This document shows positions 719 through 13,554 of a stretch of DNA of 64,000 nt, piece after piece. The stretch lies in the sequence record NC_042116.1; one strand, written 5' to 3'. The notes beneath the pieces were generated by a model that did no database searches, was not told the DNA's origin, and saw only the letters and a program-made list of their open reading frames with translations. Made by a program: the position numbers and the translations under genes. The stretch's first letter is position 1. Each line of letters begins with the position of its first letter.

Positions 719-788
719 ACTTACCGGATGATTACTTGATAGTGATTCTTTACTTTAGAAATAAAGAAAAAGAAAAACGATAAAGTAC

Positions 789-816
789 TTGACGGCAAGA
801 AAGGAAAGTGTAGAAT
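789..816 (+). promoter_or_regulatory. sigma70 promoter
   Basis: TTGACG-16-TAGAAT, AGTACT overlapping the -35. Confidence 0.7.
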
Positions 817-820
817 GTTG

Positions 821-969
821 GTTATCGAAAGGCGGTCAGGTTCGCCGTATGATAGGTAAGGGTAACAGGGCAGAATACAGTACTGTTACAGAGTAGCCAG
901 AAGTGCTACTACAGCCTTATAAAAAGCTAACTAACAGTTAGTGACCTATTTACCGCCTAACGATATAAC
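821..969 (+). ncRNA. Candidate ~150-nt multibranch structured RNA
   Basis: Nested helices 821-827/961-969, 830-836/952-958, 852-857/944-949, 858-861/915-918, 862-868/883-889, 893-897/905-909, 927-932/936-941; starts at the predicted start site; no ORF. Confidence 0.55.
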
Positions 970-1001
970 GAAAAAAGTTTCTAAGAAGTTGAAAAAAGTA
1001 C

Positions 1002-1031
1002 TTGACTGATAGAAGCAAAACATAGTACGAT
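1002..1031 (+). promoter_or_regulatory. sigma70 promoter for the first gene
   Basis: TTGACT-18-TACGAT, AGTACT overlapping the -35. Confidence 0.6.
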
Positions 1032-1082
1032 GTATCCAAGCCAAACGGCTAATATAACCTAAACTTTTAAGAGGAATTACAA

Positions 1083-1736
1083 ATGACTACTACTAACACT
1101 GCAAAAGTATCTCGTGTAACTTTGAACTCAATCATTTTCGCCACTGCTCCAGTACTGGCAGCACCAGCCGAAGGTGAGACTCACAGTAAAGAAGTAATTG
1201 CACAACACAAATCGTCAATTGCTGAATTTGTATCAAATCAGGGTAAAGAGTTGGCTGGTTTTATTTTGGGTAAAGTTGAAACGCCTGATTTGATTATCGC
1301 GATTATCAAAGAAGCGGCGAAACAAATTCCAGCAGTACAAAAGCAACTGGCAGATGAAGCGGCAGTAATTGCACTTCAAGCAGAAGAACAGCGTGTTAAA
1401 GATGCTGAAGCGGCTGAATTGAAGCGGAAACAGGATGAAGCAGCATTGCAAGCTGAAAAAGACAAAATGCTTAAATTGTTAACTGACGGCGGTTTAGATT
1501 TGGCAATCGCTCAAACAATGGTAGCGGCTGGCCTTAAAGCAAAAGCTCCAGCTAATTCACCAAAAAACAGTTATGAGCGTGTCGCGGTAACCGTTGACGG
1601 TAAAGGCTACGATGTTCCAGTGCGGGGCAACATGAGCGAAGAATTGAAAGCTCTGGTAGCTAAAGATGGCGGGGATCGTGATGCATTTATCGCAAAATAC
1701 CGCAACGAACCAGCCGCACAAGAAGTTACTGAATAA
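1083..1736 (+). CDS. H-NS-like protein (divergent)
   Basis: RBS GAGGA; coiled coil then LLTDGGLD..AAGLKAK..PKNSY..G.....LK..V...G..RDAFIAK, paralleling the H-NS linker and C-terminal domain by eye. Confidence 0.55.
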   Translation: MTTTNTAKVSRVTLNSIIFATAPVLAAPAEGETHSKEVIAQHKSSIAEFVSNQGKELAGFILGKVETPDLIIAIIKEAAKQIPAVQKQLADEAAVIALQAEEQRVKDAEAAELKRKQDEAALQAEKDKMLKLLTDGGLDLAIAQTMVAAGLKAKAPANSPKNSYERVAVTVDGKGYDVPVRGNMSEELKALVAKDGGDRDAFIAKYRNEPAAQEVTE

Positions 1737-1884
1737 TATCTCAGTACTGTAATAATAGGGGGCAAACCAGCCCCCTAAGCCGTTCTAATAGTATTTTAAT
1801 ACTAACGTGTTATAGTACTATTAGAAACGCTTAAAAGTCTTTATAGAGCGTTTTATCTTATATCTTAAGTAAGGATAAACGCTT

Positions 1885-2154
1885 ATGCAATTAACCCCAA
1901 TATCTAATTTAATTGATAAAAATACTCGCATCGCTAAAACGATGACAGCCATTAGCAGAACAACATCGGTTTTTAATGGTTATCTTGCTTTTGTTGTTAA
2001 TGGTGAATTAGTACAACGTAGGATCTATGACATGGCATATAATAGTTTATATGATTCGTGTATGTATATAGTTCACAAGAAAGTTAATTATGCCGTTAAT
2101 CTTCCCTGTAAGCCTATTAGCGGAGCGTTTAACGCTGAATCACTAAAGGCATAA
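1885..2154 (+). CDS. Hypothetical early protein
   Basis: RBS AAGGA, followed by a terminator. Confidence 0.6.
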   Translation: MQLTPISNLIDKNTRIAKTMTAISRTTSVFNGYLAFVVNGELVQRRIYDMAYNSLYDSCMYIVHKKVNYAVNLPCKPISGAFNAESLKA

Positions 2155-2164
2155 GGTAACATAA

Positions 2165-2200
2165 AAAGCCCGTTAGAATAGCTCTGACGGGCTTTTTTTA
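2165..2200 (+). terminator. Rho-independent terminator
   Basis: gcccgttag/ctgacgggc stem followed by a T-tract. Confidence 0.8.
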
Positions 2201-2209
2201 TTTGTTGAA

Positions 2210-2242
2210 AGTACTTGTATTATAATCTCAGTACTGTATAGT
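2210..2242 (+). promoter_or_regulatory. Repeated early promoter cassette
   Basis: TTGTATTATAATCTCAGTACTGTA at 2215, 3477 and 4603; near-identical inverted copy at 3404-3432. Confidence 0.75.
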
Positions 2243-2276
2243 AACCGTTATCGAAACAACTGACGGACACAACAAA

Positions 2277-2939
2277 ATGAATGCATTTAAGTTAGAGCAG
2301 TATAGAATGACTTTGGAAGTACTGGAACAAATGAAAGATTGTTTAGACCGTGGCGAGACTTATACCACTGTTAAAGGCAAGCCGTTCAACGTTACAAGGC
2401 AATTCGGTATTTGCTGGCACGTGTACGCTCATACGCCTAACCAGAACGTGACAGGGATCGGCACTGACTTTATGTGTCCTGCTTTTGCTGATATGGGCTT
2501 AGATATAGCGTATCCGGTGGAGTGTCAAACAACTGGCAGCCGCGATCAAATGCGTCAGGCATTCAGTGTACAGCGTAACATGTATGACGACAACACGATC
2601 CACGGTGCAAACCGGATCAAGCTGGTGGATTCACTGATCCAGTACTACCGCGAAAAGATGGAAACGCCGATCACTGTTACCATGTATGAACATTATTACA
2701 ATCAAGCCTTGACAGAAATGAAAAGGCGTGATTCAGCTAATGAAGCCGTATGGGATGTTTTGGATTTTGAGAACAATCAGATCTGGCGTGAACTGGCGTT
2801 AAAGATTGTTGACGAAGATCCTACACTGTCAGAAGTGGATCACGCTGCTGGTATTAACTACCCTGATGATCTAACGTTGGAAAATGTAGTTACTACTAAC
2901 TTACAGGAACGAATCCGCGAAGCATTAGAAAAGTTATAA
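2277..2939 (+). CDS. Hypothetical early protein
   Basis: 220-aa ORF with its own promoter and RBS. Confidence 0.8.
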   Translation: MNAFKLEQYRMTLEVLEQMKDCLDRGETYTTVKGKPFNVTRQFGICWHVYAHTPNQNVTGIGTDFMCPAFADMGLDIAYPVECQTTGSRDQMRQAFSVQRNMYDDNTIHGANRIKLVDSLIQYYREKMETPITVTMYEHYYNQALTEMKRRDSANEAVWDVLDFENNQIWRELALKIVDEDPTLSEVDHAAGINYPDDLTLENVVTTNLQERIREALEKL

Positions 2940-2950
2940 TCTTTACAAAT

Positions 2951-2986
2951 AAGGGGTTGACGGTTCAATCCCTTTTATAGTACTAT
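2951..2986 (+). promoter_or_regulatory. Fused terminator-promoter cassette (also ~3246, 4481, 9137, 9751, 11188, 11595, 12111)
   Basis: GGGTTGAC-loop-GTTAACCC-TTTT type hairpin carries the -35; the -10 follows the T-tract. Confidence 0.8.
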
Positions 2987-3017
2987 GTAATCACACCAAA
3001 CGAAAGGGGTTACATAA

Positions 3018-3233
3018 ATGAGATTAAGTGAGATTAGAAAAGTACTGAAGGAACTTAACAAGCTGGCGAAAGAATCGGGGAACCTCGATCCAGATATTAA
3101 GTTTTGGAGTGATGATATGGACACTGATTTACTATTAGAACTTTGTCCTGCTGATGATCTCAGTGATTCAGTACTGAAAAGCGGTAATATTCAAATAAGA
3201 TTGAATGAAGTACTTAACCCAAAAGTTAGATAA
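3018..3233 (+). CDS. Hypothetical early protein
   Basis: Own promoter and RBS. Confidence 0.7.
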   Translation: MRLSEIRKVLKELNKLAKESGNLDPDIKFWSDDMDTDLLLELCPADDLSDSVLKSGNIQIRLNEVLNPKVR

Positions 3234-3285
3234 TCTTTACAATTGCGGGGGTTGACAGCCTCCGCTTTTTTATGGTACTATAATA

Positions 3286-3336
3286 TCAATCCAGAGAAAT
3301 GGACTAACCCTAGAGGGTGCCGAGATCCATCTATAG
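3286..3336 (+). ncRNA. Two-hairpin element E3
   Basis: tcca-GAGAAA-tgga, accc-taga-gggt; promoter TTGACA(3252)-18-TACTAT. Confidence 0.55.
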
Positions 3337-3349
3337 AAAATTTAGTCCT

Positions 3350-3398
3350 TAATAGATATAGTTCCGCACCCTCTAGGGTATCCAATTTCTCTTGTATA
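3350..3398 (-). ncRNA. Two-hairpin element E4
   Basis: caa-GAGAAA-ttg, accc-taga-gggt; promoter TTGTAA(3432-3427)-17-TACAAT(3409-3404). Confidence 0.5.
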
Positions 3399-3532
3399 TA
3401 AGTATTGTACAGTACTGAGATTATAATTACAAGGGGTAAACAGAAATAAAAATTAAAATTAAAACGAAAAAAGAACTTGTATTATAATCTCAGTACTGTA
3501 CAATTCTCTATATCGAAAACGGGAGAAATGAT

Positions 3533-3988
3533 ATGAATTCAAAACAGTTCCAAGATGCAACAAGAGAAACATTTTTAAAGTACTTTCCTCATGGTCACAT
3601 AAGCATTTCTATGTTGGCAATAGGTGGTGGTTGTAATATCTTTTGTGGCTTGATTGGAGACATTAATGATGTAGGTGGTAAGATCCGCATGAATGATCCT
3701 GTAACGGTACGGGCTTATATTCATGATAACTTTTCATTTAATGATGAAAGTACTGAATTGGAAAACGTTGTTATTGAGTTCGATGGTTCGTGGATCTCAG
3801 TACTGCCAGACAATCCGCATCATTATTGTCAATCCCACAAGGTGCCAAGTCGCAAGATTAACGCAGAACCTAAAAAGGCATTAAGTAATTTGGATAAGTA
3901 CTTTAAACGATTAAAGGACTGTGTAACAGAGCAAGCAGGATTAAATCGCATTATTCAGCAGGATAAGATCCCAGCGAAATATCTATAA
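3533..3988 (+). CDS. Hypothetical early protein
   Basis: Promoter and RBS GGGAG. Confidence 0.8.
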   Translation: MNSKQFQDATRETFLKYFPHGHISISMLAIGGGCNIFCGLIGDINDVGGKIRMNDPVTVRAYIHDNFSFNDESTELENVVIEFDGSWISVLPDNPHHYCQSHKVPSRKINAEPKKALSNLDKYFKRLKDCVTEQAGLNRIIQQDKIPAKYL

Positions 3989-4063
3989 TATATTGTCAAA
4001 AGTACTTGCATTGTATAAGCGAGTACTTTACAATAAGTTATCGTTAATTGAGAGGATTCGAAT

Positions 4064-4474
4064 ATGTTACATGTTAAAGGTTTTTCTGAGGGTGGTTATT
4101 GCTTTATGATTGGTGATAAGCCTGTTTCTGTTGTTGAAGCATTGCAGAAAAATGGTAAGAAATTTAACAAGAATACATTAAACGCTTTAAATAGAAATAA
4201 TCTTGCTAATGAAAGCGATCTTGTGTCATTTGAGTTACAAGTACAATCATTACATAAAGGATTAACACCTGAATATGTAATTCAAATTTTACGCAATGAA
4301 TATAATATTGATTTTAATAATGATTTTCATGAGTTAAGTTCTGCCAGCGTACTGGATTTATTAACAGTATATCATATTGCACAATATCGAGCACCCTCAC
4401 CATGTAATCGTGATGGTTCGCCAATGCGTTATTTTTACCAGTACTTACAACGCTTCATAGAAAAGAAAAAATAA
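4064..4474 (+). CDS. Hypothetical early protein
   Basis: Promoter and RBS GAGG. Confidence 0.75.
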   Translation: MLHVKGFSEGGYCFMIGDKPVSVVEALQKNGKKFNKNTLNALNRNNLANESDLVSFELQVQSLHKGLTPEYVIQILRNEYNIDFNNDFHELSSASVLDLLTVYHIAQYRAPSPCNRDGSPMRYFYQYLQRFIEKKK

Positions 4475-4520
4475 TCAAATAAGGGGTTGACTTCGGTTAA
4501 CCCTTTTTGCTATACTAATA

Positions 4521-4570
4521 TTACTCCAGAGAAATGGACTAACCTTATAAGGTGTATAAGTGTACCTATA
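4521..4570 (+). ncRNA. Two-hairpin element E5
   Basis: tcca-GAGAAA-tgga, acct-tata-aggt (compensatory change); promoter TTGACT(4487)-18-TATACT. Confidence 0.55.
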
Positions 4571-4662
4571 ATAAAATAATTAAAATTCATACAAAAAAGT
4601 ACTTGTATTATAATCTCAGTACTGTATAATTCTTTATATCGAAAACAAACGAGGGTTTTTAA

Positions 4663-5085
4663 ATGAGAACATGTAAAGAGTGTGGGAACAATTGCAACGT
4701 ATTATCTAATGGTGTTGTCCATCATTACAACGAGGATGATAAAATTGATTATGATCTAGATGGGGATCATGTTGCAATACCTGAATTATCTGATTCTGAA
4801 AACAACATGTTAAATCCAATTCTTCAAAGTACTTTTAATTTTAATGGTGATGTTCCTTGTATTAACTACGCCGCGAATGGTGGAGGTTATGAAACTTACC
4901 AGTACTTCATTTGTGCTGATGGTGGATGTTTAGGAATTGGAACAGTAATTAATGAGTTTCATAAAGTAAACTTTAATGATCCTGATGATAAACAATGGCA
5001 CATTGTAGGGGTTGACGTGAATTATGAAAATACTAATCTGATAGATGATCACACAGGGGATTATATACCAGTAGCATATAGTTAA
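4663..5085 (+). CDS. Hypothetical early protein with N-terminal CxxC
   Basis: Promoter and RBS. Confidence 0.75.
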   Translation: MRTCKECGNNCNVLSNGVVHHYNEDDKIDYDLDGDHVAIPELSDSENNMLNPILQSTFNFNGDVPCINYAANGGGYETYQYFICADGGCLGIGTVINEFHKVNFNDPDDKQWHIVGVDVNYENTNLIDDHTGDYIPVAYS

Positions 5086-5123
5086 CACTACAACGGGGAT
5101 CATTGATCCCCTTTTGAGGTTAT

Positions 5124-5384
5124 ATGAATTTGTTTTATAGTACTAGAAAATTAGTAGTTTCATTTGATTGTAATTCTGATAAAATACATTGTGTAATATA
5201 CAGAAAAGGAATTCCCCGTTCTGATAACTGGAAAGTACTACAATCCTATACAATCAAACGTAAAGGGTTTAAACAGTTAGATGACCGTACACAAAAGGCA
5301 TGTTTACGGCAAGTACTTAAAGCCATGCGTAACCGTATAACGCAAGCCTTACATGTTGCATTAACTACAAAAGATATTTTATAA
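5124..5384 (+). CDS. Hypothetical early protein
   Basis: RBS GAGG. Confidence 0.65.
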   Translation: MNLFYSTRKLVVSFDCNSDKIHCVIYRKGIPRSDNWKVLQSYTIKRKGFKQLDDRTQKACLRQVLKAMRNRITQALHVALTTKDIL

Positions 5385-5433
5385 TATAATGAAAAAGTAC
5401 TGGACAATGCTCCGGTACTTTGTTATAGTACTT

Positions 5434-5483
5434 ACATCGAAGAGAAATTCGAATAGCCCATAGGGTTCAGGGGTATATCTATT
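5434..5483 (+). ncRNA. Two-hairpin element E6
   Basis: tcgaa-GAGAAA-ttcga, gccc-ata-gggt (G-U pair); promoter TGGACA(5401)-17-TATAGT. Confidence 0.5.
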
Positions 5484-5570
5484 AAAAATAATTAAAATTA
5501 AAATGAAAAAGAACTTGCATTATATTATGGTTATGGTAATATATGTATATCGAAACGGGAGGTTAAAGAA

Positions 5571-5639
5571 ATGAAACTACGTTATCAATGGCTGTTGTTT
5601 GCTTTGTTTATCCTTATTACCTGCGTAAACTTTGATTAG
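5571..5639 (+). CDS. 22-aa hydrophobic peptide MKLRYQWLLFALFILITCVNFD
   Basis: First ORF after a promoter, RBS GGGAGG; below the ORF-track cutoff. Confidence 0.55.
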   Translation: MKLRYQWLLFALFILITCVNFD

Positions 5640-5649
5640 GGGTTATATT

Positions 5650-5991
5650 ATGATGATTGTTAATTTTGGTGATGATATCAATTTCAATAGTATTAAGCAT
5701 ATTATTGAAAATAGTCAATCTGTATCTATTACTTTATGTTCTGGCGATGGTGATGATTTTACGGTGATAGAGCGTGAAAGAAGTAAATTTGCTGGTTTTC
5801 ATGAGGCTGATCTTATTGTTATTAGTACTGTACGGAATGCTAATGGTGATGGTATCTATGTATATCCTGAATACTTCACTATTGAACAGGCAGACACTGC
5901 TATTGAAGCCTTAAAAATAAGGGCGAGTGATACTAACATTAAATCATCTGAATTATCGGATTCATTAACTGATTTATTAGAATCGGAATAA
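5650..5991 (+). CDS. Hypothetical early protein
   Basis: ORF track, start trimmed to the RBS. Confidence 0.7.
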   Translation: MMIVNFGDDINFNSIKHIIENSQSVSITLCSGDGDDFTVIERERSKFAGFHEADLIVISTVRNANGDGIYVYPEYFTIEQADTAIEALKIRASDTNIKSSELSDSLTDLLESE

Positions 5992-6056
5992 CATATTAAA
6001 AGTACTTGCATTATATTAGCGAGTACTTTATAATAAGTTATCAAGTGAGGTACACA

Positions 6057-6104
6057 ATGAAATGGTTAATTATAGCAGTACTGATTTACATTATCTTTTT
6101 TTAA
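6057..6104 (+). CDS. 15-aa hydrophobic peptide MKWLIIAVLIYIIFF
   Basis: First ORF after a promoter, RBS GAGG. Confidence 0.45.
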   Translation: MKWLIIAVLIYIIFF

Positions 6105-6123
6105 TCAAGAGGAAGTATTAAAA

Positions 6124-6333
6124 ATGGCACATAAAGATCGTCGTTACAATGTTAACCCTGAATTTACCGGACACGAATCAGGCAAGAAACAATTTGTTAT
6201 TCGTTTTTGTGGTGATTTTGTTTCTTCGCATTCAAAGCGTGATGAAGCAGAAAAAGAGATCGCCCGATGGAAAAGTACTGGAACCGTTCCACATATCGGA
6301 AAGCAATGGGATAATCTAGTTGAACCTGTTTAA
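6124..6333 (+). CDS. Hypothetical early protein
   Basis: RBS GAGG, terminator downstream. Confidence 0.7.
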   Translation: MAHKDRRYNVNPEFTGHESGKKQFVIRFCGDFVSSHSKRDEAEKEIARWKSTGTVPHIGKQWDNLVEPV

Positions 6334-6395
6334 TTAATCAATATTAATAGTACTGGATATTTCACCAGTACTGTTTTTTTATACAGCATAATATA

Positions 6396-6446
6396 TAATA
6401 GATACATTTTCGCACCCTGTGGGTCAAAGACATTTCGCTGTCTATG
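6396..6446 (-). ncRNA. Two-hairpin element E7
   Basis: gaca-GCGAAA-tgtc, accc-aca-gggt; promoter TTGACA(6480-6475)-17-TATTAT(6457-6452). Confidence 0.55.
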
Positions 6447-6568
6447 AAGTAATAATACAGTATTTTGATATACGTGTCAAGGATTAAATTAAAATTAAAA
6501 CAAAAGAAAGTACTTGCATTAAGTATGAAGTACTGTATAATCTTTTATATCGAAACGGGAGAATTAAA

Positions 6569-6835
6569 ATGAGTAACGCATTGAAAGCCATGATTTCGTT
6601 GGTAATTTCAGTACTGATAACCTTTATAATATTAACTGCGGCGAGAGATGATGTTCTGTGGCGGTTAACCATGTTAGGATATGAAATTGAAGATACATGG
6701 TATTCTTTTTTGACATATGGCCTTAATGGGATATATGCTATATTAATGGTAGGTTGTTTTTATATTTTGTTTTGTTTAATGTTTTATATTACAGGGGGCA
6801 GTAATGAGAGTACAACCAATCCAGCCAATCATTAA
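6569..6835 (+). CDS. Small membrane protein (2 TM)
   Basis: Two hydrophobic segments; promoter and RBS. Confidence 0.7.
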   Translation: MSNALKAMISLVISVLITFIILTAARDDVLWRLTMLGYEIEDTWYSFLTYGLNGIYAILMVGCFYILFCLMFYITGGSNESTTNPANH

Positions 6836-6974
6836 GTTAGCGAATAGTACGGTCAAGAATGAATATTCAAAAATTGTTGTTGACATTCCGTGTAGTACTG
6901 TGGTATCATTAGGTTCTTACAAATCGTGTGATTTGTATAATTCAATTTATAAACAATAAAAGGTAAATTTAAAT

Positions 6975-7832
6975 ATGGGTAAGTTCATTAGTTATGGTAT
7001 TCTTGCGATTATTGTATTCGTTGGCTTGGGTGCATTGTTTGGTTCGTGGTACACGGTTGATCAGCAAGATCGTGGGGTAGTACTAACGAATGGTAAAATT
7101 ACCAGTATTGCAGAACCTGGTTTGAACTGGAAAATGCCATTTATGGATTCTGTTGTACAAATTCCAGTCACTGGACAAAATAAAAGTTATTCGAATCTAA
7201 AAGCATATAGCCGAGATCAACAACCGGCAGATATGACTATTTCTGTATCATTCTCAGTCCCAGCGGCTAAGGTAGGGGAATTATATAGTACTTTTGGTGA
7301 TATTGACAATCTAACTACTCGTGTTATTGATCGTCAAGTACCACAAGCTGTTGAAAATGTTTTTGGTCAGTTTAATGCGATTTCAGCAGTACAAGATCGT
7401 AATAAGTTAGTTACTAACTTAAACATTGCAATTAAAAAGGCAATGGAAAACTACCCAGTAGTAATTGAGAGTGTACAGGTTGAAAACCTATCATTCAGTC
7501 CAGCATATGAAAAATCAATTGAAGAACGTATGCAAGCAGAGATCGCAGTTACAAAGCGTGAACAGGACTATGCACAGGCTAAAATTTCAGCATCTATCAC
7601 AGTTGCGAATGCACAAGCTGACGCTGATAGCCAGTTAGCAAAGGCAACGGCAGCAGCTAAAGCAACACGCCTACAGGGTGAAGCTGATGCAGCAGCAATT
7701 AAGGCGAAGTCCGAAGCACTAAACAATAATCCACAACTTGTACAGTTGGCGGCGGTGGATAAATGGGATGGTGTACTACCTACTCAAATGGTTCCATCTG
7801 CTACAGTGCCGTTTGTGAATCTAAACAAATAA
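6975..7832 (+). CDS. SPFH/band-7 (prohibitin-like) membrane protein
   Basis: N-terminal TM, YTVDQQDRGVV..GK, EPGLNWKMPF, coiled-coil tail, KWDGVLP. Confidence 0.9.
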   Translation: MGKFISYGILAIIVFVGLGALFGSWYTVDQQDRGVVLTNGKITSIAEPGLNWKMPFMDSVVQIPVTGQNKSYSNLKAYSRDQQPADMTISVSFSVPAAKVGELYSTFGDIDNLTTRVIDRQVPQAVENVFGQFNAISAVQDRNKLVTNLNIAIKKAMENYPVVIESVQVENLSFSPAYEKSIEERMQAEIAVTKREQDYAQAKISASITVANAQADADSQLAKATAAAKATRLQGEADAAAIKAKSEALNNNPQLVQLAAVDKWDGVLPTQMVPSATVPFVNLNK

Positions 7833-7842
7833 GTACTATCAC

Positions 7843-7871
7843 AAAAAGCCTCGCATTGTCGAGGCTTTTTA
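7843..7871 (+). terminator. Rho-independent terminator
   Basis: gcctcg/cgaggc stem flanked by A- and T-tracts. Confidence 0.75.
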
Positions 7872-7964
7872 TTATCTGAATAATTAAAATTAAAACGTAA
7901 AAAGTACTTGCATTGCATGAGCGAGTACTTTATAATACTTACATCAACCACAAGAGGCAACAAC

Positions 7965-8321
7965 ATGAAAACTGAATTTTTCGCGACAAGAACACTGGCA
8001 CGTAACGCGGTAGAAGCTCTTAATGGTAAGTTTAAAGATTTTGGTAAAGATGCTCCTACTGGTGAACGTTGGGGGGTGCTGGTGGATGAAGTACTACCAG
8101 TACAAAAGGAACAACCTGTACTTGCAGAAGAAAAAAGTAATCTTGACGTACACCTTGATTTTCTTAGTACTGTAGCAGAAGATGCAGCAAAAGCATTGAA
8201 TCAGCCAACTGGCATTCGTGGGGAACAAACGTTAACAACACCAAATAAGAAGCCTGTACGGGTTATGTGGCGTCGTTCAATTGTGGCGGTACGTTTGTCG
8301 GCACTACTGGCAAAATCGTAA
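7965..8321 (+). CDS. Hypothetical early protein
   Basis: RBS GAGG at the trimmed start. Confidence 0.75.
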   Translation: MKTEFFATRTLARNAVEALNGKFKDFGKDAPTGERWGVLVDEVLPVQKEQPVLAEEKSNLDVHLDFLSTVAEDAAKALNQPTGIRGEQTLTTPNKKPVRVMWRRSIVAVRLSALLAKS

Positions 8322-8370
8322 CACAAACCAGTGGGGGCGGTATAATGCCCCCTTTATTAATCGAGATCAT

Positions 8371-8613
8371 ATGAAAAAAGTTAAAGTTGATAATACACAA
8401 TTACGCATACATTTCAAGGCACAAACAAAAGTACTTGATAAGGCTATTCGTATTGTGAAAGATTATAATAATGGAAGTGTTAGAGCTAGACGGTTAGGGT
8501 GTGGTTTATTTTCAGTAATAGATGTATCACATAACGAACGGATCGTTATTAAAAATAAAACACTTAATTTAATGACTCATGAACAATATAATAAATTCGT
8601 CGAACGACGTTGA
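8371..8613 (+). CDS. ParE/RelE-like small protein
   Basis: Basic 80 aa; pattern RR......S.DV....RIV.....LMTHEQYN recalls the plasmid/ICE ParE-like family. Confidence 0.4.
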   Translation: MKKVKVDNTQLRIHFKAQTKVLDKAIRIVKDYNNGSVRARRLGCGLFSVIDVSHNERIVIKNKTLNLMTHEQYNKFVERR

Positions 8614-8669
8614 CATAATCCCCTAAATATGTATAATAATAATTATACACGATTAGGGGATTTTTTATT

Positions 8670-9131
8670 ATGCCTGATAAATTTAAACATAAGAATGGTG
8701 CTACTATAGCAGGTCATGCCGATAAGTGGAGTGATGAAAATCGTTCAAGTACTAGCCATGATGCAGGTCAAGGCAGTAAAGGAAGTAGAAATCAAGGTAC
8801 AGGAATTAAAGGTAAACAAAACGCAATGCCATCACAAGGTATTGATACATCCAAAATGGATAAGTCCGAAAAATTAAAGTACTTTAATTCATTGGGTTTA
8901 CTTCAACCAAAACAAGAATTATCTATTAAAACATGGCCTGAAACATTACGCAAAGTGTTTAAAGATGAACCTGTATACATTAAAGATATTACTACAGCGA
9001 TAAAATCTATTGAACCAGCAAGATATCAACAAGCCATTCAATCAGCATTCAATGCTTATAACGAAATTACAAAACAATCAGATGATGTTTATGATATATA
9101 TGCCGCAATTATGCAAGCATTACAAGGTTAA
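8670..9131 (+). CDS. Hypothetical protein
   Basis: TTGACA-17-TATAAT promoter upstream. Confidence 0.65.
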   Translation: MPDKFKHKNGATIAGHADKWSDENRSSTSHDAGQGSKGSRNQGTGIKGKQNAMPSQGIDTSKMDKSEKLKYFNSLGLLQPKQELSIKTWPETLRKVFKDEPVYIKDITTAIKSIEPARYQQAIQSAFNAYNEITKQSDDVYDIYAAIMQALQG

Positions 9132-9197
9132 AAATAAGGGTTGACTTAGGTTAACCCTTTTGCTATTGTATCAGTACACAAACATAAGGAATATATT

Positions 9198-9548
9198 ATG
9201 AAAAAGTTATTATTACTCGCTGCATTGTTTAGTACTACAGTTTCAGCTCAAACATTTACATGTGATAACTTTACTCTGTATCAAGGTATCGGGAATAATC
9301 AATACAGACAAGTAGATGATGCAGGTGTACAATCATCTTTGATTATTACTATTGAAAGTACTGAACCATTGATTACCGTTTCTGTACAAGGTGATAAAGA
9401 AGTAGTGCAATTCTGGAAAGATTATAATGTATACAGAAATGTAACTGGTGAAATTTCACAAGATGGTAATAATTTTATAATGAAAACAGCTATACAAGAT
9501 AGTACTGGATTTTATATACCTGTTAAAATTGAGTACCATTGTAAATGA
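9198..9548 (+). CDS. Exported protein with signal peptide
   Basis: MKKLLLLAALFSTTVSA signal sequence. Confidence 0.75.
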   Translation: MKKLLLLAALFSTTVSAQTFTCDNFTLYQGIGNNQYRQVDDAGVQSSLIITIESTEPLITVSVQGDKEVVQFWKDYNVYRNVTGEISQDGNNFIMKTAIQDSTGFYIPVKIEYHCK

Positions 9549-9742
9549 AATTATCATTTCAATTTATGCAAAAACGTGTACAGTACTTAAGTACTAAACT
9601 TAAAGCATCATTTGAATTACAATATACTATTAACCAGAATTATCATTTAATGAAGAATGGAAGATTCATTGTTATGGATCAACCGCTTGAAGTACTGGAA
9701 ATAGTAGTAAGTGCATTATTAAGTAATAACATTAAAAAATAA
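9545..9742 (+). CDS. Hypothetical protein
   Basis: 4-nt overlap with the upstream gene. Confidence 0.55.
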   Translation: MKLSFQFMQKRVQYLSTKLKASFELQYTINQNYHLMKNGRFIVMDQPLEVLEIVVSALLSNNIKK

Positions 9743-9787
9743 TTAAATCAAGGGTTGACAGATGTTAACCCTTTTTGCTATACTACT

Positions 9788-9838
9788 ATCAATCCAGCGA
9801 AATGGACTAACCCTATAGGGTGTATAGTTATGTCAGTA
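9788..9838 (+). ncRNA. Two-hairpin element E8
   Basis: tcca-GCGAAA-tgga, accc-tata-gggt; promoter TTGACA(9755)-18-TATACT. Confidence 0.55.
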
Positions 9839-9947
9839 CTTTTATTATATGCATAGAAAAAAGAATTTAAAATTAAAATGAAAAAGTACTTGTGTTAGAT
9901 GCTGGAACTGATAGAATGTAGTTATTGAAACAACGGGAGTAAATGAA

Positions 9948-10187
9948 ATGGCTAATAAAGAAGTGGAATTTAAAATTAGAAAATGGTCAGATACTAACGG
10001 TCGTCCATTTGATGTAGTGCTGGTGGATCATTTAAAGAACAATCAGCATTTTCAGCCTAATGTTGAATTTAGTACTATCGAACATGCTGAAAAGCATATG
10101 GAAACTTTGAATACTTTAATTCAAAATCATCCTGACCGTATCAACTTTATTCGTGACCATTGGCCTGTTGATGCTGGTATAGAATAA
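9948..10187 (+). CDS. Hypothetical early protein
   Basis: Promoter and RBS GGGAG. Confidence 0.7.
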   Translation: MANKEVEFKIRKWSDTNGRPFDVVLVDHLKNNQHFQPNVEFSTIEHAEKHMETLNTLIQNHPDRINFIRDHWPVDAGIE

Positions 10188-10270
10188 AAATTAAAACGTA
10201 AAAAGTACTTGACTATATCAGTTGAGTACTTTAAAATAGAATCTTAATTAACGCAATAGGAAACTAAATC

Positions 10271-11164
10271 ATGAAAATGTACAAAGGCATCGCAGGTAAA
10301 GCAATCAAAGAAAACCGTCCACTGCTAAGATCAGAACTGGAATTAGTTGTTCCATCTATCTTTTCAAGTACTGGTCACGAATCACGTTCAGCCCGTTTTG
10401 CACCTGTTGCAACCATCGACGTTGTAGACCGTTTAGCAAAAGAAGGTTATCAACCATTCTTTGCTATTCAGTCCAATGTACGTGACGAATCTAAACGCGA
10501 ATTCACTAAGCATATGCTGCGTTTCCGTCAACATGATGGCAAAACATCCGGCGAATCTAATGAGATCATTCTCGTTAACGCAAATGATGGAACAAGTGCA
10601 TACCAATTAATGGCTGGTCAATTCCGTTTCGTTTGTGCTAATGGTCTGGTTATGGGTAACATGCAACATAACACAAAAATCTATCACAAAGGTAACAATA
10701 TCATGGATGACGTGATCGAAGGCGTCTATTCAGTAGTGAAAGATTTTGATAACATTGAACGTTATAAAGATGAAATGCAACTAATACAACTCAATGATAT
10801 CGAACGTAAAACGTTTGCAACTGCTGGTTATCTCATGAAAGAGGGTATGCCGGAATCAGGTTCAATGGATGACTTTGTATATAATCCATTACAACTATTA
10901 TCACGTTCAGGTCTAAACAGTCAAGACCAGTACGATAATAGTTTGTATAGTACTTTTAATACTGTACAACAACACTTAATCAACGGTGGTCAACGCTCAT
11001 TCATGGAAGATCGTAATGGTCGTACTCGCCGCCGGTCAAGCCGTAGCGTTACTAATATCAATAAGAACATTGATATCAATAGTAACTTATGGCAACTCGC
11101 TACCGCTCTGGTAGAGAAGAATACTAAGGTAGTGCATGATATCGTTGATGCACAATTAGCATAA
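10271..11164 (+). CDS. DUF932-family protein (plasmid leading-region / cryptic-prophage type)
   Basis: PSIFS...HESRSARF....T..V...L..EGYQPFFAIQS..RD..KREFTKHMLRFR; IILVNANDGTSAYQLMAGQFRFVCANGLV. Confidence 0.85.
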   Translation: MKMYKGIAGKAIKENRPLLRSELELVVPSIFSSTGHESRSARFAPVATIDVVDRLAKEGYQPFFAIQSNVRDESKREFTKHMLRFRQHDGKTSGESNEIILVNANDGTSAYQLMAGQFRFVCANGLVMGNMQHNTKIYHKGNNIMDDVIEGVYSVVKDFDNIERYKDEMQLIQLNDIERKTFATAGYLMKEGMPESGSMDDFVYNPLQLLSRSGLNSQDQYDNSLYSTFNTVQQHLINGGQRSFMEDRNGRTRRRSSRSVTNINKNIDINSNLWQLATALVEKNTKVVHDIVDAQLA

Positions 11165-11252
11165 AAAATAAGTACTAAAATCATATAAGGGGTTGACTTA
11201 GGTTAACCCCTTTTGCTATACTTATTTTATCGAAACAAACGAGGGTTAGTAA

Positions 11253-11588
11253 ATGTTAGATGTATATGTAAGTTCTGATTTAGTTTCAAATGGTAGAAAT
11301 GAATTCGGTACTGAACAAGAAAAAACAGAGTACTACATCATTGCAGAATCTCTAAATGGTCAACGTATTAGATTAGATAGTGTGTCAGTTGTTAATAGAG
11401 AATACACTGATACACAATGTACTGAGTACTTAGAACGTGTAGTTACAAAGATTAAAAATCATTTAGCTGGTGGCGGTAAGTTGAATCAAGATTGTTGGTA
11501 CGAAATAGATCCTTGCTATGGTTCACAACGTTATATCGATTTGGATAGTACTGGTTACTTTTATCAACGTGAGAAACTCGAAGATTAA
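11253..11588 (+). CDS. Hypothetical early protein
   Basis: Promoter and RBS. Confidence 0.75.
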   Translation: MLDVYVSSDLVSNGRNEFGTEQEKTEYYIIAESLNGQRIRLDSVSVVNREYTDTQCTEYLERVVTKIKNHLAGGGKLNQDCWYEIDPCYGSQRYIDLDSTGYFYQREKLED

Positions 11589-11659
11589 TAATAATGGGGT
11601 TGACTATAGTTAGCCCCTTTTGTTATAATTCTTATACACCATCACGAAAGGAAAGAAAC

Positions 11660-11857
11660 ATGACCAGAGAAGAAAGAATTGAAGCCGCTCATAAAGTACT
11701 GTCATACAAACATCTTGAAATGATGGAAGCTATGGAAAGAGTACTAGGCACGTTTGGCGAAGAAAATAAAGATAAATTCGCCGCCGTATATGATGAAGTT
11801 GAAAACATTCTTTATCCGCATGGTGCGGGTGAAGATGCAGTATACTGCGAAAATTAA
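11660..11857 (+). CDS. Hypothetical early protein
   Basis: RBS AAGGA at the trimmed start. Confidence 0.65.
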   Translation: MTREERIEAAHKVLSYKHLEMMEAMERVLGTFGEENKDKFAAVYDEVENILYPHGAGEDAVYCEN

Positions 11858-11918
11858 TAATTGACAAACTCTGTCAGTACTGATATACTGGCAGAATATT
11901 AAATCAGAGGATACAATC

Positions 11919-12101
11919 ATGGTTCAAGTAGATATGACTGAATTGCGGAAACGTTGGTATGATCTGGCACGTTCAGGTACTGCTATCACTGGTGATAATA
12001 GAACGCTTTTCAATACACTTGATGGCTGGCAACGTCAAGAATTAAAAAATGCATATCTTAAAGGTATGACAGATGAAGTGCAAGCATGGGATGAAGCATA
12101 A
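11919..12101 (+). CDS. Hypothetical early protein
   Basis: Promoter and RBS GAGGA. Confidence 0.65.
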   Translation: MVQVDMTELRKRWYDLARSGTAITGDNRTLFNTLDGWQRQELKNAYLKGMTDEVQAWDEA

Positions 12102-12147
12102 TTAAAAATAAAGGCTTGACTTAGGTTAAGCCTTTTGCTATAGTACT

Positions 12148-12198
12148 ATCAATGCAGCGAAATGCACTAACCCTATAGGGTGCGGAGCTATGTCTGTA
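12148..12198 (+). ncRNA. Two-hairpin element E9
   Basis: tgca-GCGAAA-tgca (compensatory change), accc-tata-gggt; promoter TTGACT(12116)-17-TATAGT. Confidence 0.55.
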
Positions 12199-12288
12199 AA
12201 AGATATTAAAATTCAAATGAAAAGTACTTGACCTATATAGCTGGTGGATGATATATTATTAGTACTGGATGCAACCGAGGGCAATACT

Positions 12289-12561
12289 ATGAAAGTTACT
12301 ACACTGATTAAAAAGTTGTTTGGTCAAGACGCAATCGCTGATTATATGGAAGTACTGGAAGAAGATGAAAAACAATCAGTACTCCAGTACTATACAATTC
12401 AATCAGATGAAGATGCAAGTGAACCAGATTACTTTGTTAAGTTATGGCAGGATGGATTGTATACTGTCAAAAACATTAACGGTGAAGTTATCGTGAATAC
12501 ATATAATGTAAGATTACTAAAAGAAAAGTTAAAAGTACTTGCAAACAATCATAAGGTTTAG
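12289..12561 (+). CDS. Hypothetical early protein
   Basis: RBS GAGG at the trimmed start. Confidence 0.65.
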   Translation: MKVTTLIKKLFGQDAIADYMEVLEEDEKQSVLQYYTIQSDEDASEPDYFVKLWQDGLYTVKNINGEVIVNTYNVRLLKEKLKVLANNHKV

Positions 12562-12626
12562 TATTATATATACATCGAACGGGGACAGGGAACATAATGT
12601 TACCGCCTGATTCGGGAGATTCAATC

Positions 12627-13076
12627 ATGAGCGACTTAACTACTTCCCTGCTTTCACTGGCTAAAAACAACGGCGGCAACTTCAAATCAGAAAAGCAATC
12701 TGCTATGTTTAATAGTCTGGCAAGTAATGGTGTGTTAGTTCTCGCTGGTGGATCTGTATATGGTAACACATGGTCATATGAGTTTATCATTGATAGTACT
12801 GGTGTTGTATCAGTCAATAAACTATCTTATAGCAAAGCTGGTGTTGCCAGTACTGAAGCTATGTTCTCACGCGATGGTACTGTTCAGGCTGACCGTAAAG
12901 TTGCACAGGATGATAAGAATACTAAACGTATCAAGCGTGAGATTAAAGGGCTTGAGAAACGTATCAAGCAACGTCAAGCAGAGTATGATGCTGGTCAGTA
13001 TCCCGATGCTGAAATGTTTAATAAAGCTCAGAGAGAAGATAGAGATAATTTGGAAGAGTACCAAGCAATGTTATAA
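12627..13076 (+). CDS. Hypothetical early protein with C-terminal coiled coil
   Basis: RBS GGAG at the trimmed start. Confidence 0.75.
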   Translation: MSDLTTSLLSLAKNNGGNFKSEKQSAMFNSLASNGVLVLAGGSVYGNTWSYEFIIDSTGVVSVNKLSYSKAGVASTEAMFSRDGTVQADRKVAQDDKNTKRIKREIKGLEKRIKQRQAEYDAGQYPDAEMFNKAQREDRDNLEEYQAML

Positions 13077-13141
13077 AGTACTTGACATTTATTAAAGCCA
13101 CTGTCATAATGTCGGTGGCTTAGTCTATTGAGGAATAGCAT

Positions 13142-13342
13142 ATGTTTAATGTAGTAGGTTGTTTAGGGTGTACCATTGGTAGTGCAGCGTCAGTCGATGA
13201 AGCTATCACACTGGTACGTTCACAGGTGCCAGTAGGTAAGAAGAAGCAGAGCACCATGCGTAACGCTCTCTCTACGCTACGCCAAGGCCAGCAGTACCAT
13301 GTAGACTATGGTCATTCAGGGGTAACCGTAGAGCGGCTATAG
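13142..13342 (+). CDS. Hypothetical early protein
   Basis: TTGACA promoter and RBS GAGGA. Confidence 0.65.
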   Translation: MFNVVGCLGCTIGSAASVDEAITLVRSQVPVGKKKQSTMRNALSTLRQGQQYHVDYGHSGVTVERL

Positions 13343-13554
13343 GTAAGCTGTACGCTGTTATATGGCATTTTTAATTTAATTCAAAAAATATTTTATACAG
13401 AATAAAAGTACTTGACTTTTGAAATGAGTAAGGGATACCTTAACTTTTCTGTATAAAATATGTTTGGACTATGCAAAATTTTTTTGCTTACTAAAGGCCA
13501 GTAACGCTTAGCACCCCTATAATCGGGGTATATGTATTACAATAGGAGTAAACT

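Follow-up and report, generated by a model that had tools for sequence, protein, structure and literature searches.

The first gene of the Yersinia jumbo phage fHe-Yen9-04 likely encodes a strongly diverged relative of H-NS

The nucleoid protein H-NS forms a coat on foreign DNA rich in AT and silences it, and the genome of the Yersinia jumbo phage fHe-Yen9-04 has a G+C content of 28–38%. What does the first gene of such a phage encode, and how does it bear on the way in which AT-rich phages cope with host gene silencing? We analyzed the left end of this genome, a window of 64,000 nt (NC_042116.1), in which the first gene of the phage, g001, occupies positions 1083..1736 of the plus strand, codes for 217 amino acids plus a stop codon and is annotated as 'hypothetical protein'. 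A first-pass annotation made by eye had described its product as an H-NS-like protein with a rewritten DNA-reading loop. The strings on which that description was built (KMLKLLTDGGLD, MVAAGLKAK, PKNSY, YDVPVRGN and LKALVAKDGGDRDAFIAK) are all present in the g001 translation, and those quoted for H-NS are present in the E. coli protein as translated from MG1655. From the comparisons below, we consider g001 likely to be a strongly diverged, phage-borne nucleoid-associated protein of the H-NS superfamily, probably produced immediately after infection as a binder of AT-rich DNA.

Single-sequence and family-library searches do not recover this relationship. The Pfam scan of g001 returns nothing at E ≤ 10. 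Over the whole phage genome, neither the Histone_HNS model PF00816, which does find the H-NS proteins of E. coli and Yersinia, nor the MvaT_DBD model PF22055 gives a match at E ≤ 10. Pairwise BLASTP between g001 and E. coli H-NS is not significant, and searches of the PDB sequences with the single g001 sequence and with two family profiles produce coiled-coil or chance matches only (such as FtsB, XRCC4–myosin and PsaE). Scanning ten distant members of the family against Pfam likewise gives nothing significant; the output includes two noise-level matches to PF22470, the H-NS N-terminal domain, with E values of 0.22 and 0.87. A sub-threshold Pfam match to the Lsr2 dimerization domain (E 0.029) is seen in the relative P0033; no Lsr2 Pfam domain is found in g001, and we rejected an Lsr2- or Rok-type fold for it as having no support. 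The sole PHROGs match of g001 is phrog_20181, whose function is listed there as unknown.

The resemblance emerges from profile–profile comparison. Using HHalign, a profile of 55 g001 family members was compared with a set of ten QGR-type γ-proteobacterial H-NS sequences, which gave a probability of 88.6%, a P value of 2.6e-6 and a score of 41.9 over 76 columns. The same comparison with 150 column-shuffled alignments gave a mean score of 11.4 (sd 2.1, maximum 20.7), and the reversed alignment scored 18.9. Since these nulls never exceed 21 against the real score of 41.9, the resemblance exceeds what chance would give. The same H-NS region is reached independently by two disjoint subsets of the family: the 35 distant members alone reach 92% with a P value of 6.8e-7, and the 20 close members alone reach 41% with a P value of 2.8e-4. 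The match spans the central helix-turn-helix of H-NS (dimerization site 2), the linker and all of the DNA-binding domain at the C terminus, and g001 is collinear with γ-proteobacterial H-NS from residue ∼124 on. Taken separately, the two modules match H-NS in the same order, the helix-turn-helix with a P value of 5.8e-5 and the C-terminal domain with one of 5.6e-4. No match is obtained between the g001 family and RGR-type short H-NS (P 0.17), and the comparison with 15 MvaT-family sequences, with a P value of 0.0067 over 18 columns covering the loop and a helix only, is not convincing. As a sensitivity check, H-NS was itself compared with MvaT and matched in the N-terminal region only; thus, profile methods are weak inside the H-NS superfamily.

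In the C-terminal part, residues 162–203 of g001 align with residues 93–134 of H-NS without a gap. The aligned pairs include G173/G104, K189/K120, G196/G127 and F202/F133, together with RGN on QGR. The H-NS hallmarks Trp109 and Pro116 are missing in g001, with the changes W109 to V, T110 to P and P116 to S. The loop residues R181-G182-N183 (codons CGG GGC AAC, positions 1623..1631, plus strand) are placed by HHalign on the AT-hook-like motif Q112-G113-R114. The minor-groove loop of g001 reads R-G-N where that of H-NS reads Q-G-R, keeping the invariant Gly and carrying Asn, the substitute found in MvaT, where H-NS has its final Arg; the Q/R-G-R motif is followed at the first two positions but not at the last. 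G182 is present in 55 of the 55 family members and N183 in 53, the other two having Arg as in H-NS. Position 181 is occupied by R in 26 members, K in nine, T in eight, S in six and other residues in the rest, and Arg166, at the start of strand 1, is found in 46 of the 55 and is a candidate equivalent of MvaT Arg80, the separate Arg of the AT-pincer. In MvaT, Gly99 and Asn100 contact minor-groove bases, with Asn100 acting as the minor-groove reader (PMC4466236). Loops of this Gly–Asn type prefer TpA steps and can accommodate interruptions by G:C (PMC4466236). The loop had been called rewritten, and DVPVRGN does stand where H-NS has TWTGQGR; however, the Gly is kept, the first residue is basic as in the Q/RGR variants and the Asn is MvaT-like. 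Because the central Gly and a basic first residue are retained and the Asn is that of MvaT, we regard the loop as a hybrid of two known solutions, not as a new reading head. HHalign bears out the parallels drawn by eye in the helix-turn-helix, in the loop and in the final pair of helices, but displaces the pairing of PKNSY with PAKYSY by four residues.

The predicted structure agrees with this alignment in its register. The C-terminal domain comprises residues 162–207 (1566..1703, plus strand), as outlined by AlphaFold2 (AF2), HHalign and VIA-align. Without templates, AF2 predicts strands at residues 166–171 and 174–179, a loop at 180–185 and helices at 186–194 and 199–206, followed by a bridge residue, and this hairpin-loop-helix-helix falls in the register of the profile alignment with H-NS 97–137. 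The model is moderately confident (pLDDT 72). Its order of elements agrees with that of the MvaT C-terminal domain, β1-β2-α1-α2-β3 (PMC4466236). BFVD returns members of the same family only, including an independent model of a relative with 43% identity that has the same fold with an rmsd of 1.8 Å. The net charge of the domain is only +1, and that of H-NS is similar by our count.

Searches of solved structures with these models gave little. When the C-terminal model was compared with 48,161 PDB representative chains using VIA-align, two chains only reached Z ≥ 2. One is the DNA-bound MvaT DNA-binding domain, 2mxf_A, a weak match with a Z of 2.3 and an rmsd of 3.0 Å for 43 of 47 residues; the other is an unrelated anti-CRISPR chain with a Z of 2.4. 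The solved H-NS chains were not recovered with the C-terminal model. A Foldseek search of the PDB had been proposed as a check on the H-NS assignment, and it did not bear the assignment out: neither the full nor the C-terminal AlphaFold model matched any chain at E ≤ 0.001, H-NS and MvaT included. When the top 311 Foldseek chains were rescored with VIA-align, none reached Z ≥ 2, so these rows are noise. The wide VIA-align search with the full model was dominated by long-helix matches and was uninformative, and an ESM Atlas feature search with residues 126–217 gave no usable match.

N-terminal to the collinear region, g001 departs from H-NS. Residues 1–82 (1083..1328, plus strand), as delimited by the family alignment, are helical, with AF2 helices at 36–64 and 68–80, and carry the conserved family-specific motif VTLNSI.FA..P. 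Comparison of g001 residues 1–123 with H-NS 1–58 in HHalign gives a P value of 0.025 and a probability of 2%, with no likeness to dimerization site 1, the 'hand-shake' fold of H-NS residues 1–40. Next, AF2 predicts one long helix rich in E, K and A at residues 83–135 (1329..1487, plus strand), in line with the extended N-terminus and coiled coil described in the first-pass annotation; this modeled helix is presumed to be a coiled-coil oligomerization element. The helix-turn-helix at residues 124–149 (KMLKLLTDGGLDLAIAQ...; 1452..1529, plus strand) is aligned by HHalign with H-NS 56–81, the central dimerization site 2, which has been defined as residues 57–83 (PMC6936261). Around this element, the AF2 model consists of helix 83–135, a turn and helix 140–154. 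A basic linker rich in Ala, Pro and Lys follows at residues 150–161 (1530..1565, plus strand); the calculated net charge of residues 150–165 is +2, and model confidence is low here, with pLDDT below 50 at residues 154–163. The label H-NS-like is supported for site 2, the linker and the C-terminal domain, by both HHalign and AF2 register, but not for the N-terminal region corresponding to site 1.

The position of g001 suggests when it is expressed. Two sigma-70-type promoter-like sites lie 5′ of the gene on the plus strand. P1 (783..816) consists of a AAGTACTTGAC box with TTGACG, a 16-nt spacer and TAGAAT, and matches the consensus at 10 of 12 positions in a scan; P2 (996..1031), identified by the consensus scan and by reading the sequence, consists of a AAGTACTTGAC box with TTGACT, an 18-nt spacer and TACGAT and lies ∼50 nt upstream of the g001 start codon. 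Allowing at most one mismatch, AAGTACTTGAC occurs 15 times in the window compared with 1.55 expected, with copies in the early region beyond those in P1 and P2. The probable early timing of g001 expression is deduced from these promoter-like motifs. A ribosome-binding site, AAGAGGA, can be read at 1068..1074 of the plus strand (the record annotates it at 1071–1074). The GC-rich hairpin GGGGGC-AAACCA-GCCCCC (1758..1775, plus strand), read from the sequence 22 nt past the g001 stop, has no T-run, and a terminator scan that requires one did not call it; it is possibly a terminator or an RNA-stabilizing hairpin.

The g001 family is conserved among the jumbo phages matched, of the Eneladusvirus, GAP32, CBB and Munch types, where it occupies the genome end or the terminal repeat; in two relatives, CBB and fENko-Kae01, the homologue lies within the direct terminal repeat. 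A further ∼35 clusters of g001-like proteins occur in metagenomes. The g001 locus itself was found in wastewater and other metagenome runs and in no RNA-seq run, and the contigs of two distant family members are short ORFan stretches that added nothing. A virion protein was also considered and rejected, on the weak evidence that a neighboring gene in fENko-Kae01 has an LC-MS/MS note whereas the homologue has none.

These features allow a course of action to be proposed. Host RNA polymerase would transcribe g001 from the sigma-70-type promoters once the genome end enters the cell. The product may self-associate via its long helix together with the site-2-like element, and would contact AT-rich DNA in the minor groove, showing little sequence specificity. 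By occupying the 28–38% G+C DNA of the phage itself, g001 would prevent host H-NS from coating that DNA and silencing it. Ler does not silence AT-rich DNA but drives H-NS off it, and counter-silencing of this kind by g001 would need no contact with H-NS. By this analogy, a Ler-like counter-silencer is our best guess for the role of g001, albeit a tentative one.

Several other explanations were weighed. It is unlikely that g001 is a phage-supplied silencer or architectural protein that compacts or silences AT-rich DNA as H-NS does, acting perhaps on later phage genes, on mobile DNA (superinfecting or resident) or on AT-rich host islands including defense loci. The layout of oligomerization region, linker and DNA-binding domain is indeed that of a complete bridging-type protein (cf. 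PMC6936261), and the H-NS gene of phage EPV1, a homologue described in a phage genome (PMC7074111), has been suggested to have such a role. However, a virulent phage would gain little from silencing its own early region, the home of g001, and nothing in silico separates silencing from counter-silencing.

We also consider it improbable that g001 is a dominant-negative H-NS antagonist, which would pair with site 2 of the host protein and cap or poison its filaments, with DNA binding being secondary. The best-matching sub-region is site 2 (P 5.8e-5 for g001 124–149 against H-NS 56–81), and truncated or diverged H-NS homologues of mobile elements, such as H-NST and Hfp, do act on H-NS (PMC7074111). 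Nevertheless, identity in the site-2 region is low and core positions of H-NS are changed in g001 (Y61 to M, L75 to A and L76 to Q), there is no likeness to site 1, and the full conserved DNA-binding domain argues for the importance of DNA binding.

Equally improbable is the absence of any real kinship, with a generic hairpin and two helices placed after a coiled coil by chance or convergence in a protein with another job, such as protein binding or a structural one. All of the standard family and fold searches are negative, as this would predict, and the sole structural match (Z 2.3) is tied with the anti-CRISPR chain (Z 2.4). Against this, the disjoint family subsets match the same H-NS region (P 7e-7 and P 3e-4), two modules occur in the same order with nulls of at most 21 for a real score of 42, and the predicted secondary-structure register coincides with the H-NS alignment.

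A more elaborate proposal, which we regard as a long shot, makes the g001 family the 'first-in' chromatin protein of nucleus-less jumbo phages. Here, expression of g001 from the terminal repeat would start almost as soon as the DNA is injected; the protein would polymerize on AT-rich phage DNA via its N-terminal domain, and its H-NS-like site 2 would cap or co-polymerize with host H-NS. The host silencing filament would thereby be turned into a coat that is permissive or protective and that possibly nucleates at AGTACT-bearing early promoters. If true, this would be a new mode of counter-silencing, through filament hijack, as opposed to inhibitor binding (T7 gp5.5 and LUZ24 Mip) or DNA mimicry (T4 Arn). 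Lastly, a sequence-specific reader of AGTACT in early promoters, acting as an autoregulator or temporal switch, is highly improbable and was rejected because nothing ties the protein to the motif: AAGTACTTGAC boxes recur in the early region and in both sites 5′ of g001, and MvaT-type loops prefer TpA and tolerate G:C interruptions (PMC4466236), but H-NS/MvaT-type domains read minor-groove shape with low specificity and not 6-bp palindromes (PMC4466236, PMC6936261).

Returning to g001 as a likely H-NS relative, the phage answers to H-NS-type proteins known so far are small inhibitors, namely T7 gp5.5, T4 Arn and LUZ24 Mip (PMC8501957, PMC4635203). Here, a cryptic relative of H-NS would be the first gene in a clade of ∼350-kb enterobacterial phages with 28–38% G+C, unrecognized by annotation and family libraries. 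If g001 binds AT-rich DNA as predicted, it would offer a concrete entry point for testing how xenogeneic silencing is evaded, or put to use, by nucleus-less jumbo phages; its R/K-G-N loop would be a third solution between the Q/RGR of H-NS and the pincer of MvaT, and the viral H-NS superfamily would be larger than sequence models suggest.

Among known systems, E. coli H-NS (137 aa; PF00816, PF22470) has in common with g001 a long helix that leads into a helix-turn-helix, a basic linker and the hairpin-loop-helix-helix; the Gly of the hairpin, that of the loop, Lys120, Gly127 and Phe133 are conserved. In contrast, g001 is 80 residues longer, its first ∼120 residues bear no relation to site 1, its loop reads RGN instead of QGR and the TWTG..TP signature is lost. 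Unlike H-NS, it comes from a virulent jumbo phage and falls below every Pfam threshold. MvaT of Pseudomonas (2mxf, PF22055) is the sole H-NS-type structure recovered by the fold search and, like g001, has Gly–Asn at the tip of the DNA-reading loop. However, MvaT has no counterpart of the first loop residue and draws on a separate segment for its Arg80; in g001, the loop itself contains Arg181. The N-terminal domains of the two proteins also differ. Nucleoid-protein homologues carried by phages include the H-NS of phage EPV1, the Lsr2-like proteins of actinophages and CgpS (PMC7074111). The EPV1 gene is close to host hns and easily recognized, whereas the g001 family is cryptic; Lsr2 and CgpS differ from g001 in having another fold and occurring mainly in temperate phages. 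Ler, a protein of ∼123 aa encoded on a genomic island, activates transcription of specific operons. It is listed as a C-terminal H-NS homologue (PMC7074111), and serves as our working analogy for g001: a DNA-binding domain of the H-NS type on a different oligomerization scaffold.

The jumbo myovirus fHe-Yen9-04, a Yersinia phage in the genus Eneladusvirus, has a G+C content of 28–38%, and DNA of such low G+C is what H-NS targets. By megablast, the window matches bases 1–64000 of the 354,378 bp genome. The first annotated gene, g001 (1083–1736, + strand), has an annotated ribosome-binding site and encodes a 217-residue 'hypothetical protein', which the first-pass annotation had read as H-NS-like. 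The open reading frame was borne out; all peptide strings quoted for g001 occur in its translation, and all those quoted for H-NS are found in E. coli H-NS translated from MG1655. In the standard libraries, a Pfam scan of g001 gave no family at E ≤ 10, PHROGs gave one family of unknown function only, and sequence and profile searches of the PDB gave coiled-coil or chance matches only. BLASTP of g001 against H-NS was not significant, and the Pfam models of H-NS (PF00816) and MvaT (PF22055) found no match in the whole phage genome.

A word-based search identified 19 relatives with identities of 41–97%, exclusively from Rak2-like jumbo phages (Yen9-03, Serratia BF, Cronobacter GAP32, Pectobacterium CBB) or metagenome contigs; none of the 19 contains a Pfam domain. 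By tblastn, homologues occur in 24 phage records, each labelled 'hypothetical protein', including jumbo phages of Erwinia, Xanthomonas, Salmonella (Munch, 7t3, SE_PL, PHA46) and Klebsiella (fENko-Kae01). When 1.84 billion cluster representatives were screened with a profile built from the C-terminal half, 47 matched at E ≤ 0.001. About 36 of these are proteins of 106–249 residues laid out like g001: the N-terminal region is followed by an E/K/A-rich helix, a helix-turn-helix with the motif G-(L/V/I)-D-L-x-V-A, a basic linker and a C-terminal module with the motif x-R-V-x-V-x-V-x-G-x-x-Y-x-(M/V)-P-x-x-G-N-M-S-x-x-L-K-D-L...G-L-x-R-x-x-F-I-x-K-Y. The g001 family comprises the conserved leading gene of a jumbo-phage clade and a wider metagenomic family. 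In one distant member, P0033 (386 residues; L144:588–1748), the G-N-loop C-terminal domain is fused behind a region of ~300 residues that has a GNPPFG motif and resembles a DNA methyltransferase (weak Pfam match to Methyltransf_23, E = 0.097). Such a fusion, if real, would suit a DNA-binding role of this domain.

We used the Pfam models to gather 30 diverse H-NS and 16 MvaT loci in bacterial genomes, and compared the proteins with the phage family by HHalign. The 55 aligned family members matched all 28 H-NS proteins with a probability of 35.7% (P = 3.9e-4, 73 columns); nulls were 12.2 for the reversed alignment and 10.2 ± 2.3 for 200 column shuffles (maximum 21.8). When the H-NS set was then divided according to loop, the ten QGR-type proteins from gamma-proteobacteria gave a score of 41.9 with the family (probability 88.6%, P = 2.6e-6, 76 columns), compared with 11.4 ± 2.1 for 150 shuffles (maximum 20.7) and 18.9 for the reversed alignment. 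Taken separately, the 35 distant members reach a score of 45.4 (92%, P = 6.8e-7) and the 20 close members one of 31.7 (41%, P = 2.8e-4), so one H-NS region is found by two disjoint halves of the family. Cut apart, the helix-turn-helix (P = 5.8e-5) and the C-terminal domain (P = 5.6e-4) each match H-NS in the preserved order. The N-terminal 123 residues of g001 match neither H-NS nor MvaT, and the family comparisons with RGR-type short H-NS (P = 0.17) and with MvaT (P = 0.007, loop and helix only) are unconvincing. As a sensitivity check, H-NS was compared with MvaT, its accepted structural relative; the match is confined to the N-terminal region, so sequences of this superfamily carry inherently little signal. 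The homology is drawn from HHalign comparisons of modest alignments (Neff 2.4–4.9), about a dozen in all, and the best P values withstand this multiplicity.

In the HHalign alignment, residues 124–149 of g001 (AEKDKMLKLLTDGGLDLAIAQTMVAA) are superposed on H-NS 56–81. Central dimerisation site 2 of H-NS spans residues 57–83, with helices α3 and α4 (PMC6936261), and by this alignment is the counterpart of the g001 segment. Beyond a basic linker, g001 162–203 aligns without gaps to H-NS 93–134: Gly173 pairs with Gly104 at the hairpin turn, Arg181-Gly182-Asn183 with Gln112-Gly113-Arg114, Leu188-Lys189 with Ile119-Lys120, Gly196 with Gly127, Asp200 with Asp131 and Phe202-Ile203 with Phe133-Leu134. 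The proposed pairing of DVPVRGN with TWTGQGR is reproduced exactly, and that of PKNSY with PAKYSY is off by four residues. Gly182 is present in 55/55 members, position 183 has Asn in 53 members and Arg in the other two, and position 181 is Arg in 26, Lys in nine, Thr in eight, Ser in six and another residue in the rest; Lys189, Gly196, Phe202, Ile203, Arg199 and Arg166 are each kept in 46–54 of the 55. On this profile evidence, g001 is homologous to H-NS, and laid out like it, from site 2 onward to the C-terminal end. The Q/R-G-R motif of H-NS and Lsr2 sits flat within the minor groove; the MvaT loop is shorter and contacts bases by Gly99-Asn100, with Asn100 replacing the last arginine and Arg80, from another segment, standing in for the missing first loop residue (PMC4466236). 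The first residue of the phage R/K-G-N loop is of the H-NS type, and the last is of the MvaT type. 'Rewritten' is a fair description of this loop, but the change stays within known minor-groove-reading chemistry, so retained binding of AT-rich DNA by g001 would be the economical reading.

AlphaFold2 on an alignment of 20 sequences (pLDDT 69) predicts helices at 36–64, 68–80, 83–135 and 140–154, then strands 166–171 and 174–179, a loop at 180–185, helices 186–194 and 199–206, and a final bridge residue. A model of the C-terminal piece by itself repeats the C-terminal elements (pLDDT 72, core 74–84). The MvaT fold, which is similar to that of H-NS, has the order β1-β2-α1-α2-β3 (Ding et al.; PMC4466236), and the predicted C-terminal elements of g001 follow it in register with the HHalign alignment. 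Foldseek against the PDB was negative for the full-length and C-terminal models, and none of its own 311 candidates reached Z = 2 on VIA-align. In the VIA-align all-against-all comparison with 48,161 PDB representatives, only two chains reached Z ≥ 2: the DNA-bound MvaT C-terminal domain (2mxf_A; Z = 2.3, RMSD 3.0 Å, 43/47 residues) and an anti-CRISPR (Z = 2.4, RMSD 4.6 Å). The MvaT match is weak in absolute terms, and carries weight only because the target class had been specified in advance and so few chains were listed. An independently predicted relative in BFVD has the same C-terminal fold (RMSD 1.8 Å over 51 columns). The structural evidence thus consists of moderate-confidence models and one weak Z score.

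Upstream of g001 are two promoter-like sites of the sigma-70 type, TTGACG-16-TAGAAT (789–816) and TTGACT-18-TACGAT (1002–1031), and AAGTACTTGAC stands just ahead of both. Exact copies occur at 783, 996, 10203, 12222, 13076 and 13406 (stretch 783–13416), all of them on the + strand; with at most one mismatch there are 15 sites in the window compared with 1.55 expected, mainly within the first 13 kb. This element appears to be an extended −35 box that recurs in early promoters. After the stop codon comes a GC hairpin (1758–1775), read from sequence. In most of the 24 phage records, the homologue lies 1–5 kb from the left end. Pectobacterium phage CBB carries two copies, one per copy of its 'redundant repeat', and in Klebsiella phage fENko-Kae01 the homologue lies within a 19.7 kb direct terminal repeat; a packaged genome of either phage thus has the gene twice. 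Only one copy stands in the fHe-Yen9-04 record, so its genome ends may have been collapsed in assembly. The two promoter-like sites, the AAGTACTTGAC boxes, the hairpin and the terminal-repeat position in relatives suggest immediate-early transcription of g001 by the host RNA polymerase.

Other repeats were observed nearby. Between the hairpin and the g002 ribosome-binding site, an imperfect inverted repeat (1776–1833; TTCTAATAGTA ... TACTATTAGAA) includes AGTACT and gives its own minus-strand match in self-search. Self-search of bases 1–2500 found at least five + strand copies of a short element at ~278–316 (agtactatagtatcaatccagcgaaatgg) in the first 12 kb (272–410, 3275–3395, 4516–4554, 9784–9822 and 12144–12187). 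A second short repeat, directly downstream of the terminator-like hairpin of g002 (2163–2197), recurs between the next genes (2208–2256, 3470–3518, 4596–4628 and, on the − strand, 3408–3433), with one copy 100% identical over 33 bases.

Expressed early, g001 would oligomerise, bind the minor groove of AT-rich DNA and occupy the phage DNA, keeping host H-NS off as a Ler-like counter-silencer or competitor. We favour this role tentatively, at less than even chances, because the family conserves a complete DNA-binding module, because a virulent AT-rich phage must keep its early promoters open, and because site 1 is unlikely to mediate mixed filaments, the N-terminal oligomerisation part being unlike that of H-NS. 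Less likely rivals are dominant-negative action through site 2 and a function as a true silencer or architectural protein, which has been proposed for EPV1 H-NS (PMC7074111). That g001 and H-NS lack real kinship would fit the negative Foldseek search, but the profile match to QGR-type H-NS argues against it. The first-pass proposal that g001 reads AGTACT has no support.

In the literature searched, we found no link between Rak2-like or other jumbo phages and an H-NS homologue, and a comparative study of jumbo phages mentions none (PMC7824862). Phage-encoded homologues of xenogeneic silencers are already known (EPV1 H-NS, actinophage Lsr2 and CgpS; PMC7074111), as are phage inhibitors of H-NS-type proteins (gp5.5, Arn and Mip; PMC8501957, PMC4635203; also MotB). 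Beside these systems, we rate the g001 family as a putative cryptic branch of the H-NS superfamily, marked by an N-terminal domain of its own and by an R/K-G-N loop.
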